64,000 nt of DNA, taken from the sequence record KT895374.1. One strand, 5' to 3'. The stretch's first letter is position 1; the number at the start of each line of letters is the position of its first letter. Below the pieces are notes generated by a model. It was not told the origin of the DNA. It did no database searches and saw nothing but the letters and a program-made list of their open reading frames with translations. A program made the translations under genes and the position numbers. Below, piece after piece: positions 47,340 to 57,283 of this stretch.

Positions 47340-48470
47340 ATGGAGAGGATAAATAATATGCTTATTGATAATATTGAGTCTAATTATCTAACCAAATTAG
47401 ATAAAAAAGATTTTCGAAAAATTATTATTGAAAAATCATGTAATAAAGATTTAATTAAGCAACTTTCAGAAAAATATAATATTTCCAATGATGTATTATA
47501 CCTAGTTTCTTTAAATTATACTTGTGAAAAAGTTAAGATGGAAAATTTACTATATGATATTGAAAAAATTCTAGAGGATTACCACTTAGAAAGAGATAAT
47601 TTCTTTATGGTAAGAAATCAATCAAATTTATACACTAATATTGCCCATGACTTATTTAATGAGAGTTTAAATTCTGTTGATACTGCACTATGCTATAATT
47701 TTTGGAAAAACTCAATTAATGAAGAAAATGATTTAGATACCTTTAAAAAATCATATAGTGATCTTAAAAATCATTTTAATCCCTTTATAGTGGAAGATAA
47801 ATTCAATACATCATTCTTTAGAGAGAGAAATAAAGAAAATTACGAAAAATCATTTAATGCTCTTAAAGAAGATACCATTAAAGAATTTACTAAAATGATG
47901 GTTAAAATTGGTTTATTAGAAATAAATAATGATGAATCTCTATTTGAATACATTGAGAAACCTAATCAGTTTGTTAAAGAAAAAGAAGTTATTAATGAAT
48001 CTGCTGATTTAGTTTTAGAAGATAAAGAAGTATTCAATGAAGACCTTGCACCTAAAAATAATAAAACTAAAAGACAGAAAATTGAAGCTCTTATTACAAA
48101 AGTAATTTCTACTCTTGACGTTACAGGATTAAATACTAATAAGTATAAAAAATTCTTTGGTAAAATGACAGATAGTCAATTTGATCAATATATGAGAAAG
48201 TTTTTAAAAGATGAAGATGAGAATTTTTATTTAGAAATTTTACCTAATAAAAATGAGCCTTCACTGGAGCAACTTAATAAGGCTTTGGATATATTAAAAG
48301 TTCCTATGAATGAGTATTTATATCTTAAACATGACGGTCATAAGGATGATCCAATTCGAACAGCTTATAAAGTACCTATTGGGTATATTACAGTTCGAAG
48401 GGTACAACAGATTTTAAGTAAGAAAAATACCTACTCACTTGATATTAGTCAACGAAATATGAAAACGGGT
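47340..48470 (+). CDS. virion RNA polymerase beta subunit C-terminal fragment (phiKZ gp149-like), exon 1
   Basis: LDVTGLNTNKYKKFFGKMTDSQF...ITVRRVQQILSKK...RNMKTG pattern; long unassigned N-terminal region. Confidence 0.7.
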
Positions 48471-48586
48471 TAATTTGGCTCACTTCTATAGTAATATAGA
48501 TGTTAAAAGTTCTTTAATTTCTGGGAACTCCTTAGAATTCTAATTTATTAGAAATTGGACAATCAGAAGCGAAGATTAATAAATCT

Positions 48587-48598
48587 AACAATCTATTA
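48587..48598 (+). promoter_or_regulatory. intron-internal late promoter AACA-ATCTAT-TA
   Basis: ~22 nt upstream of the endonuclease start; identical to the motif at 30110. Confidence 0.6.
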
Positions 48599-48619
48599 AA
48601 TAAATAGGTTAAGTTAGAG

Positions 48620-49546
48620 GTGAATGTTATGGAAAATTTTTCAAACAAAGTTAATAGTTTAGATGAAAATTTTATTTTTATCGAAGGAGATTATACAAGT
48701 TTTAAAGATACTAAAATAAAAGTCATGCATAGAAATTGTAAAAGTGTCTTTGAAATTAAGTATAAGAGTTTTAAAAGAAGGCAAAAATGCCCTAATTGTT
48801 TACCAAATAGAAAATCAAACTTAGACGAATTTAAAAGAAAATTATCAGATTATAGTAAAGGGAAAATTATAGTTTTAGATGATAATTATAAAAATAATAG
48901 AACTCCTTTAATGGTTATGGGTAGAGATTGTGGACATAAATGGTCTTCCAGACCTGATAATCTCTTAAAAGGTCATGGATGTCCAAAATGTAATGGTGGA
49001 TCAAGAATAAATCATGAAGATTTTATTTTTGAGGTTAATAGATTAACTAATAATGAATATGAAGTTATTGGTAGTTATATCAATAATAAGACTAAAATAA
49101 CCTTAAGACATAAAATTTGTGATAATAATTGGGAAGTAACACCATTGAACTTTATTCATAATTATACAAGGTGTCCATTTTGTAAGAAAACATCTAAAGG
49201 GGAATCAGCTATAATAGATTGGTTGGATAAAAATAAATTCGACTATGAAAGAGAATTTACTATTGATAAGTGTAAAAATAAGAATAAACTAAGGTTTGAT
49301 TTTATGGTTAAAATAGACGATATATTTTGTCTAATTGAATTTGATGGTAAACAGCATTTTAAAACTGGTGGTTTCTTTGATGAAGAATATATGTCAAAAA
49401 TAAAAAATAATGACCTAATAAAAAATAATTTTTGTCAAAAAAATAACATTCCCTTATTAAGAATAAATTATTTAGAAATAAATAATATAGACAATATTCT
49501 TGATAAATTTATTAATAACGTTCAACGACTATCGAAAGCTTATTAA
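48620..49546 (+). CDS. intron-encoded homing endonuclease (Zn-ribbon repeats + PD-(D/E)xK/Vsr-like nuclease)
   Basis: three CxxC-bearing repeats (HRNC..CPNC, RDCGH..CPKC, HKIC..CPFC) then KGE..EREF..RFDF..IEFDGKQHF..KNNFC..IPLLRI; 3' end overlaps intron R element. Confidence 0.8.
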   Translation: MNVMENFSNKVNSLDENFIFIEGDYTSFKDTKIKVMHRNCKSVFEIKYKSFKRRQKCPNCLPNRKSNLDEFKRKLSDYSKGKIIVLDDNYKNNRTPLMVMGRDCGHKWSSRPDNLLKGHGCPKCNGGSRINHEDFIFEVNRLTNNEYEVIGSYINNKTKITLRHKICDNNWEVTPLNFIHNYTRCPFCKKTSKGESAIIDWLDKNKFDYEREFTIDKCKNKNKLRFDFMVKIDDIFCLIEFDGKQHFKTGGFFDEEYMSKIKNNDLIKNNFCQKNNIPLLRINYLEINNIDNILDKFINNVQRLSKAY

Positions 49547-49691
49547 TAAGTGAGTAGAGTACACTGTAAGCGATTGACAGTGGAAACAGGAACTATCCTA
49601 CTGGGATAAAGATATAGTCTAATCTTATGGGAAACCATAAGCAGTTCATTAGGGAACGTATTAATGTGTAGCGACATTAATAGAATATACG

Positions 49692-50012
49692 CAAGTTACA
49701 GGAGATTCACAGGTTGCTAAGATCAACCAAACAGAATCTTATTCAATGATTGCTATCGGCGCAAATGAAGGTCTTAAAGAGTTTTTAGGACCACGAGCTG
49801 ATTCACAGGTATCTAAAATGGATATGTATAAAAATATTAGTATGTACGGTTATACTAAATTAGAAGAGCTTTCTAGAGATATTACTGAAAATCAAACTCT
49901 AAATACTTTGTATATCAGTCTAATGGGTGCAGGTCTATCTAATGATCTATTGAAGGAAGATATTTCTAAAGAAGATTTAGAAAAGAAAATTCTTAAACAA
50001 ATCAATAAATAA
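49692..50012 (+). CDS. virion RNAP beta C-terminal fragment, exon 2 (spliced ~483 aa)
   Basis: QVTGDSQVAKINQTESYSMIAIGANEGLKEFLGPRAD continues the gp149-like pattern. Confidence 0.7.
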   Translation, partial: QVTGDSQVAKINQTESYSMIAIGANEGLKEFLGPRADSQVSKMDMYKNISMYGYTKLEELSRDITENQTLNTLYISLMGAGLSNDLLKEDISKEDLEKKILKQINK

Positions 50013-53481: not shown

Positions 53482-53498
53482 TAATAAATAAATTATAT

Positions 53499-53545
53499 TT
53501 TGAGATAATATTCTATTAATTTAGAATATTATCTCAAAGAGTTTT
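53499..53545 (+). terminator. long hairpin / probable terminator
   Basis: TTTGAGATAATATTCTA-ttaatt-TAGAATATTATCTCAAA. Confidence 0.6.
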
Positions 53546-53693: not shown

Positions 53694-54801
53694 ATGAATG
53701 ATATTAATGAAATTAAGAATGAGGATTATGAAAACTCACATCGATTTCTAGCAGAAGAAGTTTTAATTCCAAACGCAAATAAAACAGACGCTAACAGATC
53801 AACTATGTTTTGTTCACATCTAGCACAAGCTATTACATTAAAACATTCAGAACCACCTTTGGTCTATACTAACTTTGAAAATCAAGTAGGGCAACATTCA
53901 ACTGTAGGATATAAAAAAGCAAATGCAAACTATCAGGTAATTAAAAAGATTAATAAAAACAGATACAATTATATCATGATTGTACAAAATACAGAAACTA
54001 AAGAGTATCATTATTTCAATAGAAATGAATGTGAATGGTTGACTGAACATTATGGGTTTAAATGGAATAATGAATTAATTGATTCATTAGAGGAAGAAGA
54101 CATCTTAGAGACCGATGATGTTCTATACAGAAATGACTGTTATGATGAAAATATGAACTTTGGTTATGGTGTAAATCTAAATGCTGTTTATTTCACATAT
54201 GCAAACCAAACGTTAGAAGATGCTTGTGTTATCTCTGAATCAGCCGCTAAAAAGTTAACAAGCTATAGTGTTAAAAAACTAGAAGTTACTGTTAACACAA
54301 ATGATATCTTGTTAAATCTTTATGGTGACGATGTAGAATATAAGTGTTTCCCTGATCTTGGAGAGGAAATTAAGAATCAGATTATTACAGCTAGAAGACG
54401 AGTTAATTATGAAACAATGATCTATGAGTTGAAAAATACTAAAGATCTAAAAGAAAATGACACACCTTTTTATACAGATGGTAAGATTGTTGACATTGAA
54501 ATCTTCTCTAATATGGATGAAGAGGAACTAGAAAAACAAACATACAATAGTCAGATTAAAAAATACATTAGAATGCAGGATAAGTATTCAAAAGAAATTT
54601 ACACTGAATTAAAAGATATTGTAGAGAATAAATCAAATAAAATTTCTGATGAATTGATTCATCTCTATAATAATCATAAAAAGCGTATTGATGAAAATTC
54701 AGTATTTGTTCACCAGAAGAGTGAATTCAATGGGTTTATTATTCACTTTACTGTTTTAGAAGAGGAAGCCTTGAATAAGGGTTCAAAAATTACGGGGAGA
54801 T
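53694..54801 (+). CDS. non-virion RNAP beta subunit C-terminal fragment (AR9 gp089 / phiKZ gp71-73-like), exon 1
   Basis: NRSTMFCSHLAQA, GVNLNAVY...TLEDACVISES, KGSKITGR (beta GDK..GRHGNKG motif). Confidence 0.85.
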
Positions 54802-55098
54802 TTGTTTCTGGGTCTCCGTATAGTAGTGATACTATACTAGAAATTTCTCTAACTGCTGGAACATCCTATATTTTATAGGACAATCAGCATCCAAGCCTCT
54901 TTTAGAGGAAGGTTCAACGACTATCGAAAGTCTATTAATAAATAGATTAGTAGAGTACACTGTAAGCGATTGACAGTGGAAATGGGAAACTCTCTTTTTA
55001 GAGATGAAGATATAGTCTCATCTATATGGTAACATATAGCAGTTCATAAGAGAACGCATTAGATAGTAGCGTATCTAGTGGAAGGTGTAATTATAGTG
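54802..55098 (+). ncRNA. group I intron 1 of nvRNAP beta (297 nt, no ORF)
   Basis: P1 exon GGAGAU with IGS GUCUCC (54812-17, U.G at splice site); P10 GTTTCTGG with exon-2 TCGGGAAC; P AACTGCTGGAA, Q AATCAGCATCCAAG, R GTTCAACGACTA, S AAGATATAGTCT; ends in G. Confidence 0.9.
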
Positions 55099-55112
55099 TC
55101 GGGAACAAGGGT
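55099..55112 (+). CDS. nvRNAP beta exon 2 (14-nt micro-exon completing F-G-N-K-G)
   Basis: T+TC GGG AAC AAG GGT restores KITGRFGNKG. Confidence 0.88.
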
Positions 55113-55197
55113 AAGCTAATAATGCCCCATTATACAGTAATGTATAATTGCAAACCTCTTTAACTGCTGGAAATCCAAATAATTTTACACCCAAGTA

Positions 55198-55209
55198 AAC
55201 ATTAAATTA
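55198..55209 (+). promoter_or_regulatory. intron-internal late promoter AACA-TTAAAT-TA
   Basis: ~24 nt upstream of the LAGLIDADG start. Confidence 0.55.
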
Positions 55210-55232
55210 ATAAAATTTAATGAGGTGTAATT

Positions 55233-55922
55233 ATGGACAATCAGCATCCAAGCTTATTAGTTAATGAAGATGAGTGTTTTCAATTATTGATTGGTACTTT
55301 ATTAGGAGATTCTACAATTGAAAAGAAGAATAGATCAATAGTAAATACACAGTCAATAATTCATAGAGATTATGTAGAAATGAAATATAATATTTTTAAA
55401 AAATATTATAAGGTTGGAGTTTTGGGAGAAAGTAAAAACTGGGGAACAAACCCAAAAGAAGAGTTAAGAGTGGGTATTAGATATAGAATTTGGGATAAAG
55501 AACTATCAAATAAAATTGAAAGAATTATGTTTGATGAAAACCATAAGAGAATTATTCCAAATGATTTAAATATAATTACACCATTAACTCTTTTATTTTG
55601 GTATTTAGATGATGGAGCATTTATTGTTAGAGATAACGGCAAATATATTAGAAGAAGTTTAAGAATTGGATTGAAATCTTTTAGTGATGAAAGTATACTG
55701 AGACTGATAGATTATTTAAAAGAAAAGTATGATATTTCCTTTAGGGCAGAATATGATAAAGGTAGAAATACTATTTTAAAAATCTGTATGGAATCAGTAA
55801 AAGAGATTGCTAAATTCTTAGAATTAATGTATCCATTTTATAATTATATCCCAAAGAGCCTTAATTATAAATTTCAACCATATTTCAAAGAAACTCATTT
55901 ATCTCATCTTAATCTAGTCTAA
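55233..55922 (+). CDS. intron-encoded LAGLIDADG homing endonuclease (LAGLIDADG_2 type)
   Basis: QLLIGTLLGDS and LTLLFWYLDDG motifs; GAGGTG SD. Confidence 0.85.
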   Translation: MDNQHPSLLVNEDECFQLLIGTLLGDSTIEKKNRSIVNTQSIIHRDYVEMKYNIFKKYYKVGVLGESKNWGTNPKEELRVGIRYRIWDKELSNKIERIMFDENHKRIIPNDLNIITPLTLLFWYLDDGAFIVRDNGKYIRRSLRIGLKSFSDESILRLIDYLKEKYDISFRAEYDKGRNTILKICMESVKEIAKFLELMYPFYNYIPKSLNYKFQPYFKETHLSHLNLV

Positions 55923-56098
55923 CTAATAAGAAGGTTCAACGACTATCGAAAGCATAGGTTTATAAGGGATTATGAACTGAATAAGCGAGTAGAGTACACT
56001 ATATATTATAGTGGAAAAGGGAGGTATCCTATCTATCTAGACCAGATATATAGGATAATGATATAGTCTGATCCTCATAGTAATATGAGAAAATTATG

Positions 56099-56194
56099 GT
56101 TATTAGCGAAATCGTACCAGATGATAAAATGCCTACTGTTCAAGAAGGTAAATTTAAGGGATTGAAAGCTGATATTGCTTTGAATCCGTTGGGT
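56099..56194 (+). CDS. nvRNAP beta exon 3 (96 nt)
   Basis: VISEIVPDDKMPTVQEGKFKGLKADIALNPLG, matching beta VIS.I.P..DMP...DI.LNPLG. Confidence 0.9.
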
Positions 56195-56482
56195 AATAAA
56201 ATGCCCAACTAAAACTCTCTTAACTGCTGGAAACTCTTTAGAGACTTTAGTACCTATTGGTAATAATCTAAAGTATTAGACAATCAGCATCCAAGCTCCT
56301 TTAGGAGAAGGTTCAACGACTATCGAAAGCTTATCAATAAGTGAGTAGAGTACAATACAAGTGTATTGGAAACAGAGAGTACTCTTAGAGTAAAGATATA
56401 GTCTCAACTCTAAAGAAATTTAGAGGATTCTATTTCATTATAGAATCGTAATCAAAGTGACGTTTGATTGCAAAGATAATTG
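56195..56482 (+). ncRNA. group I intron 3 of nvRNAP beta (288 nt, no ORF)
   Basis: 7-bp P1 GUUGGGU/GCCCAAC; P, Q, R, S motifs; ends in G. Confidence 0.9.
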
Positions 56483-57232
56483 GTTTTTAATAGGCTAAAC
56501 CCAAGTCAACTTATAGAACAGGAGCTAAACTGGATATCCAAACATATCCGAAAATATATTGAAGAAGAACAAGACCTTTCTAAGAAAGAAGAAATCTTAT
56601 TAGATTATCTTCAAGTGGTAAACAAAGAAGAAACAGAAATAATGAAAGAGTATATTAGCCATCTAGATAATAATCAGAAGGAAGAATTCTTTAATGAGTT
56701 AGTAGAAAAAGGTATTCCTATCTGTCAGAAACCCTTCTTTGATAATGTGGGTCTAGATGAACTATTCGCTCTTTATGAGAAATATGACGATATTGATTAT
56801 TTCAACTGTGAGGGAATTACTACACCGCTGATTATCGGAGAACTTTATTTCTTACGTCTTAAGCACGAACCCCAGAGTAAGTTCTCAGCAAGAAGTACAT
56901 CATTTATGAACTTAAGAAATCTACCTGCTAAGTCTAAGAGTTATAAAGAAAATAAAGAATTGCACTCCAAGACACCTGTAAGACTAGGTAATATGGAGAT
57001 TTCAAACTTAAGTCTAGTTAATGATATGGAACCTATTATGAATATGCTTAACTCATATTCTAATAATAAAACTAATAGAAGAGAATTAATTACACAACTC
57101 CTTACTGGAAATCCTTTTGATCCTGAAATTGAGTATACTGATATGGAATCCAACACAAGTAAAATTCTTAAAGCTCTAATGACTGGTCTTGGATTAAAAA
57201 TTGAAGATACTAATTCTGATGAAGAAGAATAA
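56483..57232 (+). CDS. nvRNAP beta exon 4 (spliced total 1968 nt, 655 aa)
   Basis: VFNRLNPSQLIE, RLKHEPQSKFSARS, PVRLGNMEISNL correspond to beta NPLGV.SR.N.GQ, KL.H....K.HARS, QRFGEME. Confidence 0.88.
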   Translation, partial: VFNRLNPSQLIEQELNWISKHIRKYIEEEQDLSKKEEILLDYLQVVNKEETEIMKEYISHLDNNQKEEFFNELVEKGIPICQKPFFDNVGLDELFALYEKYDDIDYFNCEGITTPLIIGELYFLRLKHEPQSKFSARSTSFMNLRNLPAKSKSYKENKELHSKTPVRLGNMEISNLSLVNDMEPIMNMLNSYSNNKTNRRELITQLLTGNPFDPEIEYTDMESNTSKILKALMTGLGLKIEDTNSDEEE

Positions 57233-57283
57233 ATAAAAATATAAAACACTTATTACATTCCTATTATATGGAATGTAATAAGT

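Follow-up and report, generated by a model that had tools for sequence, protein, structure and literature searches.

Positions 53694-57232 of the stretch analyzed here, a window of 64,000 nucleotides (nt) from sequence record KT895374.1, carry a single predicted gene for the C-terminal half of the beta subunit of a non-virion RNA polymerase (nvRNAP), interrupted by three group I introns that lie side by side and leave an exon of 14 nt between the first two. This region (3539 nt) is 100% identical to positions 115694-119232 of the record, which belongs to Bacillus phage vB_BpuM-BpSp (hereafter BpSp), a PBS1/AR9-like jumbo phage of the genus Takahashivirus that exists as a propagated isolate (PMC4870245). 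Very probably, the three introns are independent selfish elements that excise themselves from one beta-subunit gene in three reactions. The three-intron structure is real and missing from the public annotation, and the same pattern is already known in related phages. In the record, the locus is divided among four separate coding sequences (CDSs), of which gp155 is named "RNA polymerase beta subunit C-terminus" and gp156, gp157, and gp158 are hypothetical. No intron is annotated at the locus in this record, and the word "intron" is absent from the BpSp proteome paper (PMC4870245). The public genome can now be corrected: a single essential gene comprises gp155, gp157, and gp158, and the product of gp156 is a homing endonuclease.

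The Restored Polymerase Subunit

Joined end to end, the four exons (Table 1) form a single open reading frame (ORF) of 1968 nt that encodes 655 amino acids (aa). The exon pieces lie in three different frames, and the single frame arises exactly at the splice sites defined by the U that ends each 5' exon and the G (omega-G) that ends each intron, a pattern found at all three junctions. The protein reads ...GSKITGR-FGNKG-VISEIVPDDKMP...NPLG-VFNRLNPSQ... across the junctions, and its alignment with the uninterrupted AR9 gp089 is gap-free at each of them; the exon coordinates, length, and product given in an initial annotation of this stretch proved exact. Sequence identity is about 69% over 654 aa with the AR9-type protein P0001, which is 99% identical to AR9 gp089. 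In the solved structure of the AR9 nvRNAP (PDB 7S00, chain C), exon 1 corresponds to residues 1-369 and exon 4 to residues 407-652. The 37 residues lacking between them equal the five encoded by exon 2 with the spare nucleotide of exon 1, plus the 32 of exon 3. Full-length colinearity, including the GxKxxGRxGNKG and NPLG motifs, places the product among the beta C-terminal subunits of jumbo-phage nvRNAPs, and the restored stretch also matches the bacterial beta motif GDKxAGRHGNKGVISKI...NPLGVPSRMN. The junction peptides of the spliced product are ITGRFGNKGVISEIVPDDK and ...ALNPLGVFNR.

The lysines of GSK and of GNKG line the active site of RNA polymerase (RNAP). By alignment arithmetic, the GSK lysine in exon 1 corresponds to Escherichia coli beta K1065, which we take to be the classic cross-linked lysine, and the GNKG lysine in exon 2 corresponds to K1073. 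The initial annotation had named the latter as the nucleotide-binding lysine, which this numbering does not support.

That gp155, gp157, and gp158 are instead separate polypeptides, or parts of a decaying pseudogene, is extremely improbable. Such a reading could appeal to the four CDSs in the GenBank record and to the natural splitting of jumbo-phage RNAP subunits into several genes (PMC7598289). However, the only GNKG-coding stretch between exons 1 and 3 is the 14-nt piece TCGGGAACAAGGGT, and this piece is untranslatable alone. Moreover, the exact union of three frames at the U and omega-G sites, the Rfam-grade ribozymes in every gap, the single-copy state of the gene (a second copy was not found in BpSp), and the occurrence of the joined form in nature (see below) all argue for one interrupted gene.

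Table 1. Coordinates of the exons, introns, and associated features in the window.
Feature	Position	Strand	Description
Terminator-like hairpin	53498-53539	+	Closes upstream UvsX-like gene; marks start of transcription-unit region
Exon 1	53694-54801	+	369 codons + 1 nt; ends ...GSKITGR + T
Intron 1	54802-55098	+	ORF-less IA-like group I intron; 297 nt; Rfam 83.1 bits; P10 guide 54802-54811; P1 guide (internal guide sequence, IGS) 54812-54817; P4 54854-59/54884-89; P7 54917-23/55013-18; P7.1; P7.2; P9 with GUAA loop; omega-G 55098
Exon 2	55099-55112	+	14-nt micro-exon; encodes (F)GNKG
Intron 2	55113-56098	+	Group I intron, ORF looped out of P6; 986 nt; P10 guide 55115-55123; IGS 55124-55127; P2 55129-35/55142-48; P3 55155-61/56017-24; P4 55165-70/55241-46; P7 55939-45/56064-69; P8; P9 (GUAA loop); omega-G 56098
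Homing endonuclease gene	55233-55922	+	Annotated gp156; 229 aa; double-motif LAGLIDADG, I-SceI-like, intact
Exon 3	56099-56194	+	Annotated gp157; 96 nt, 32 aa (VISEIVPDDKMP...ALNPLG)
Intron 3	56195-56482	+	ORF-less IA-like group I intron; 288 nt; Rfam 82.0 bits; P10 guide 56198-56202; IGS 56203-56209; P3 56215-20/56374-79; P4 56225-30/56284-89; P7 56316-22/56399-404; omega-G 56482
Exon 4	56483-57232	+	Annotated gp158; VFNRLNPSQ... through stop
Terminator-like hairpin	57248-57283	+	3' of polymerase gene

Structure of the Group I Introns

The Rfam covariance model for group I introns (RF00028, gathering score 50 bits) matches introns 1 and 3 at 54789-55039 and 56154-56425, in both cases over model positions 1-253 (scores in Table 1). 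At relaxed thresholds, a third match covers the 3' half of intron 2 (56026-56088; 29.8 bits, E 3.7e-5, model positions 159-251). Intron 2 is not scored by Rfam as one unit because a 690-nt ORF sits in P6. After removal of the ORF-specific loop, it aligns with introns 1 and 3 through P2, P3, P4, P5, P7, P7.2, P8, and P9, and each of the three introns has recognizable P3, P4, P7, and P8 helices. These matches and core helices bear out the earlier proposal of three tandem group I introns. The P7 strands (ACGACTA/TAGTCT) and P4 strands (TGCTGG/TCAGCA) are identical in all three, which also have the core strands AAGGTTCAACGACTATCGAAAG and GATATAGTCT in common. By comparison, P2, P3, P7.2, P8, and P9 vary from intron to intron, but changes on one strand are compensated on the other so that pairing is maintained. 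The longest block common to the introns is 52 nt at 92% identity. Judged from these patterns, the three introns are relatives and not recent copies of each other.

The subgroup IA assignment was made by inspection, without a subgroup-specific model, and refers to the P7.1/P7.2 hairpins between P7 and the 3' strand of P3. Such extra hairpins occur at 54931-46 and 54958-78 in intron 1 and at 56329-42 and 56353-68 in intron 3, and intron 2 has P7.2 plus a longer element before it.

Two other readings of the locus were rejected. A twintron does not fit, as the introns lie side by side and are separated by pieces that code for conserved residues (GNKG; VISE...NPLG) and occur in joined form. An assembly artifact was also dismissed, as only short core blocks (at most the 52 nt mentioned above) are common to the introns and the endonuclease piece was encountered again in an independent sample.

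Splice-Site Pairings and the 14-nt Exon

Each junction is supported by a P1 helix with a closing U.G pair (54801/54812, 55112/55124, and 56194/56203) and by a P10 helix whose guide lies directly 5' of the guide G. This agrees with the initial annotation, including its P10 of 9 bp. Helix lengths were obtained with a helix-walking script, and chance rates are the share of window positions (P10) or window T positions (P1) with a helix at least as long. In intron 1, P1 has 6 bp (GGAGAU/GUCUCC; chance 3e-3) and P10 has 10 bp with nt 1-10 of exon 2 (chance 3e-4). For intron 2, the corresponding values are 4 bp for P1 (GGGU/GCCC; chance 3e-3) and 9 bp for P10 with the start of exon 3 (chance 1.4e-4), and those for intron 3 are 7 bp (chance 5e-5) and 5 bp (chance 8e-3). 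Of the possible skipped forms, exon 1 joined to exon 3 or 4 shifts the frame, and exon 2 joined to exon 4 is in frame, minus 32 conserved residues. Pairing between the P10 guide of intron 2 and the first bases of exon 4 is limited to about 3 bp (counted by hand; the sole cross combination checked).

In exon 2, nt 1-10 pair with the P10 guide of intron 1 and nt 11-14 with the IGS of intron 2, such that all 14 nt are paired with no overlap. The initial annotation recognized this double role of the micro-exon; its conclusion that splicing must be ordered does not follow, because the two pairings use different nucleotides. Any splicing order would come from steric or folding effects. One possibility, which we regard as rather doubtful, is that the ribozymes flanking the 14-nt exon cannot dock together, in which case one must go first and the subunit would be produced stepwise. 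The claiming of all 14 nt by guides, the lack of a spacer between ribozymes of about 300 and 990 nt, and the stepwise splicing of tandem group I introns in fungal mitochondria (PMC12308204) are consistent with this scheme, but the base pairing forces no order, and in MarsHill-type phages the same motif accommodates an exon of 21 nt. A more speculative proposal is that exon 2 acts as a docking platform for two ribozymes, whose cores splice cooperatively or in a fixed order. If true, no viral protein-coding gene would be known in which independent group I ribozymes are naturally packed more tightly. A fully paired 14-nt exon between ribozymes with near-identical cores also offers a natural test case for folding without mispairing or exon skipping.

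Introns 2 and 3 both follow GGGT and begin with AA..AAUGCCC, in which the guide AAUGCCC is common to both, and their restored target sites are GGGT^GTTATTA and GGGT^GTTTTTA, respectively (^ marks the insertion point). One of the two may therefore derive from a relative of the other that jumped to a look-alike glycine codon 96 nt away. In addition, several introns of related phages are inserted after a GGT glycine codon and have a GCC guide. These similarities suggest that the introns may reach look-alike GGU sites through reverse splicing or off-target cleavage, which would contribute to the hot-spot character of these glycine-rich motifs; such jumping between the sites of introns 2 and 3, if true, would explain GGU-rich motifs as intron hot spots.

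The Joined Form in a Soil Metatranscriptome

Parts of the locus were found in two coded runs (X1 and X2), namely a soil metatranscriptome and a "DNA?" run of identical size and contigs, which is probably the same data filed twice. A 300-nt contig reads GGGAACAAGGGT followed by 56099-56194 and 56483-56674, with about 96.5% identity. It contains 12 of the 14 nt of exon 2 joined to exon 3, skips the 288 nt of intron 3 exactly, and fixes the exon 2/3 and exon 3/4 junctions at exactly the predicted bases. The insertion boundaries of introns 2 and 3 are fixed by this contig whether it represents RNA or an intron-free strain. A second contig (96% identity) covers 55788-55989, which comprises the 3' end of the endonuclease gene and the intron 2 core, and two further contigs cover parts of exon 1. 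The source is a relative of BpSp with about 96-99% identity, known from these four short contigs only. Such a set of contigs would be expected from spliced mRNA together with intron RNA in a closely related phage.

Several points weigh against one transcript spliced by three ribozymes. The soil evidence consists of assembled contigs of a relative rather than of BpSp itself, the joined contig could stem from a strain without the introns or from DNA carryover in the RNA library, and the exon 1/exon 2 junction is covered by no soil contig. Furthermore, P1 of intron 2 is short (4 bp), and mispairing between introns is conceivable given that their core strands are near-identical.

Proposed Origin and Excision of the Introns

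The explanation we favor is three separate, self-splicing selfish introns in one gene. The introns are predicted to self-splice in three reactions independent of each other, and the intron 2 endonuclease is predicted to be active and to make its intron mobile. Terminator-like hairpins bracket the polymerase unit (Table 1), and a transcript of roughly 3.6 kb would be produced in which each ribozyme folds. Each internal guide would pair with the end of the upstream exon, forming P1 with a U.G pair at the cleavage site, and with the start of the downstream exon, forming P10, and two transesterifications would excise each intron to give the 1968-nt mRNA and the 655-aa subunit. The intron 2 endonuclease most likely drives homing of this intron into intron-free alleles of co-infecting relatives. 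The 14-nt exon is then probably a by-product of two separate invasions at neighboring sites in the most conserved motif of the protein. Selfish introns, made phenotypically silent by self-splicing, would sit where imprecise loss would kill an essential enzyme, and conserved active-site codons are an expected target of parasitic insertion (PMC12908238). The element is not of a new kind and there is no sign of a regulatory function.

An Intron Hot Spot in Related Phages

The gene is uninterrupted in AR9, PBS1-type, PALS_2, SA1, and phiR1-37 phages. The ten nearest relatives in the database (64-70% identity) likewise have no break in either motif, and a search of 5.8 billion proteins revealed no relative above 70% protein identity. 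Single BpSp pieces used as queries had no match in IMG/VR or the JGI metagenomes; an alignment query returned 31 related IMG/VR loci. In five of these the break falls at AR9 residues ~369-373 and in two at ~411-414. In the annotations, this gene consists of three pieces in Madawaska, four in MarsHill (three introns), and six in Machias (five introns). Breaks at AR9 residues ~365-373 occur in Madawaska, Machias, MarsHill, PB50, and loci L030, L038, L039, L040, and L042, and those at ~411-414 in Internexus, L033, and L040. None of the introns of Internexus, Madawaska, Machias, MarsHill, and PB50 reaches the Rfam gathering threshold, and their positions were therefore taken from tblastn breaks and sequence reading.

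The insertion sites differ among these phages. The site GS^K is used in MarsHill and PB50, R-T^xx by BpSp intron 1 and in L040, and YG^(G/N)KG in Madawaska, Machias, MarsHill, L030, and L039. The sites GNKG^V and NPLG^V are used only by BpSp introns 2 and 3, respectively. Sites further downstream occur in Internexus, L033, and L040; the single Internexus intron, at VFNRL(N)^PSQ, lies 15-18 nt downstream of the BpSp intron 3 site. In MarsHill (L007, 7048-7407), two compact introns of about 135 and 180 nt (hand-counted) surround a 21-nt exon that encodes K-I-T-T-R-Y-G, and in Machias (L006, near 8921) a small exon encoding KHEPSGKL lies between an endonuclease-bearing intron and the next intron. 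Across the clade, at least six distinct sites fall within about 50 nt of the GSKITGRxGNKGV motif. This motif and NPLGVxNRLNPSQ form a hot spot on which introns have landed independently many times in this phage clade. BpSp adds two or three new insertion sites and has the shortest inter-intron exon seen in the clade. Such a dense hot spot can serve the study of target choice and of competition among selfish introns.

The suggestion in the initial annotation that the introns control the timing of late transcription finds no support. A device of this kind, in which three introns delay or gate late transcription, is very unlikely, although production of the subunit needs all three splicing events and an "on-switch" idea has been raised for phage introns generally (PMC11878797, discussion). 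AR9 and the closest relatives lack introns at these sites and their genes work without them, intron content varies freely between sister phages, and one of the introns carries a homing endonuclease, which is a hallmark of selfish elements. A parasite would likewise be expected to insert into conserved active-site codons (PMC12908238).

Comparison with Known Systems

The closest parallels are the Staphylococcus phages MarsHill, Madawaska, and Machias, in which the orthologous gene also has several group I introns, with insertions in the GSKIT.RYG.KG motif. MarsHill further resembles BpSp in its very short exon between two introns (21 vs. 14 nt). However, the Staphylococcus sites (GS^K and YG^GKG) are a few bases off those of BpSp (R-T^TC and GNKG^V). 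The Staphylococcus introns are also compact (about 160-180 nt) and sub-threshold in Rfam, whereas BpSp introns 1 and 3 score above the threshold, and they are annotated, whereas those of BpSp are not. AR9/PBS1-like phages are reported to carry group I introns (Lavysh et al., 2016, as cited in 10.1101/2020.12.14.422802). AR9 belongs to the same genus as BpSp, yet its own copy of the gene, g089, is uninterrupted.

Three introns per gene are also found in orf142 of phage Twort, for which self-splicing of three group I introns and exon skipping have been described (Landthaler and Shub, 1999, as cited in PMC11878797); orf142 is a tail tube gene, unlike the RNAP gene of BpSp. Mini-exons of fewer than four codons "occur regularly" in organelle genes, and exons of 3 and even 1 nt have been reported (PMC10352661; PMC12308204). 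Fungal mitochondria likewise have tiny exons between self-splicing introns and tandem group I modules that lie side by side and are spliced stepwise (PMC12308204). These systems are organellar and often maturase-dependent, whereas BpSp is a bacterial virus and the gene concerned encodes an RNAP subunit. The description of the BpSp arrangement as extreme in the initial annotation is therefore not upheld, given the six, four, and three pieces of Machias, MarsHill, and Madawaska, the 21-nt exon of MarsHill, and the regular occurrence of organelle mini-exons (PMC10352661).

The Homing Endonuclease of Intron 2

The ORF of intron 2 encodes a LAGLIDADG protein with two motifs that carry acidic residues, ...LLGDS... 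and ...YLDDGA... It matches Pfam PF03161 (LAGLIDADG_2) with 73.8 bits (cut-off 25) and I-SceI over residues 14-201 (E 4e-8), and a Shine-Dalgarno sequence (GAGGTG, 55222-55227) precedes it. These features suggest that the protein probably mediates homing. In addition, it may harm co-infecting relatives that lack the intron, by analogy with phiPA3 gp210 (PMC11620839). Like BpSp, phiPA3 has a group I intron with a homing endonuclease at a conserved site of a jumbo-phage multisubunit RNAP gene. The phiPA3 case involves one intron, an HNH nickase, and the virion RNAP of a nucleus-forming Pseudomonas phage (PMC11620839), whereas in BpSp the introns number three, the enzyme is of the LAGLIDADG type, and the RNAP is the non-virion one. 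A role as a competition weapon that cuts the intron-free polymerase gene of co-infecting relatives, in addition to homing and not in place of it, is conceivable but on balance unlikely. Two points speak for this role: the endonuclease gene of BpSp is intact, has a ribosome-binding site of its own, and lies within an essential RNAP gene, and the phiPA3 gp210 intron endonuclease acts in just this way (PMC11620839). However, several bases of the target site are different in relatives.

At the start of the endonuclease gene, the initiation codon and the eight codons at its beginning (55233-55256) are at the same time conserved ribozyme sequence, comprising the 3' strands of P5 (which contains the initiation codon) and P4 and the 5' strand of P6. 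Once intron 2 folds, the initiation codon should therefore be masked, which should put translation in competition with splicing.

Possible Translation into the Introns

The exon frame continues from exon 1 into intron 1 for 77 nt, to a stop at 54876-54878 inside P5; gp155 as annotated is exon 1 plus this read-through. The frame enters intron 2 by 51 nt (stop 55161-55163, past the 5' strand of P3) and intron 3 by 18 nt (stop 56210-56212). As it reaches far into introns 1 and 2 and only 18 nt into intron 3, disturbance by ribosomes could be unequal, and ribosomes trailing the polymerase could perturb the folding of introns 1 and 2 more than that of intron 3.

Other Introns in BpSp and Related Phages

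Part of intron 1 (54998-55058, from the P7 3' strand to P9.1) contains stretches of 52-61 nt that are 97-98% identical to sequences of Enterococcus phages EF1/EF5 and of "bajarodcaudo virus 1" (from rodent faeces), where they are unannotated or hypothetical. The intron 1 core thus appears to circulate among unrelated phages. The locus query matched five places within KT895374.1; therefore, more copies of the intron family are present elsewhere in the BpSp genome.

In Listeria phage LPJP1 (L004, 5740-6162), rpoB as annotated ends at AR9 residue ~575. The rest of the protein (residues 577-664) is encoded about 420 nt further downstream in a different frame and is listed as a hypothetical protein of its own. 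From this arrangement, the break is probably another unannotated intron. The loci L017, L020, and L033 break near the same position.

Within the window, a fourth, related group I intron lies at about 48474-49690 in the interval 47340-50012, with a score below the Rfam gathering threshold. In common with the other three it has the core strand, at 49517-49538 (one mismatch), and GATATAGTCT at 49611-49620. The intron splits a homolog of an AR9/PBS1 "hydrolase" gene (47340-48473 and about 49680-50012; approximate boundaries), and the locus is annotated as separate hypothetical genes. The intron ORF (48620-49546) has CapR, DUF4379 zinc-finger, and DUF2726 domains and is likely to encode a homing nuclease.

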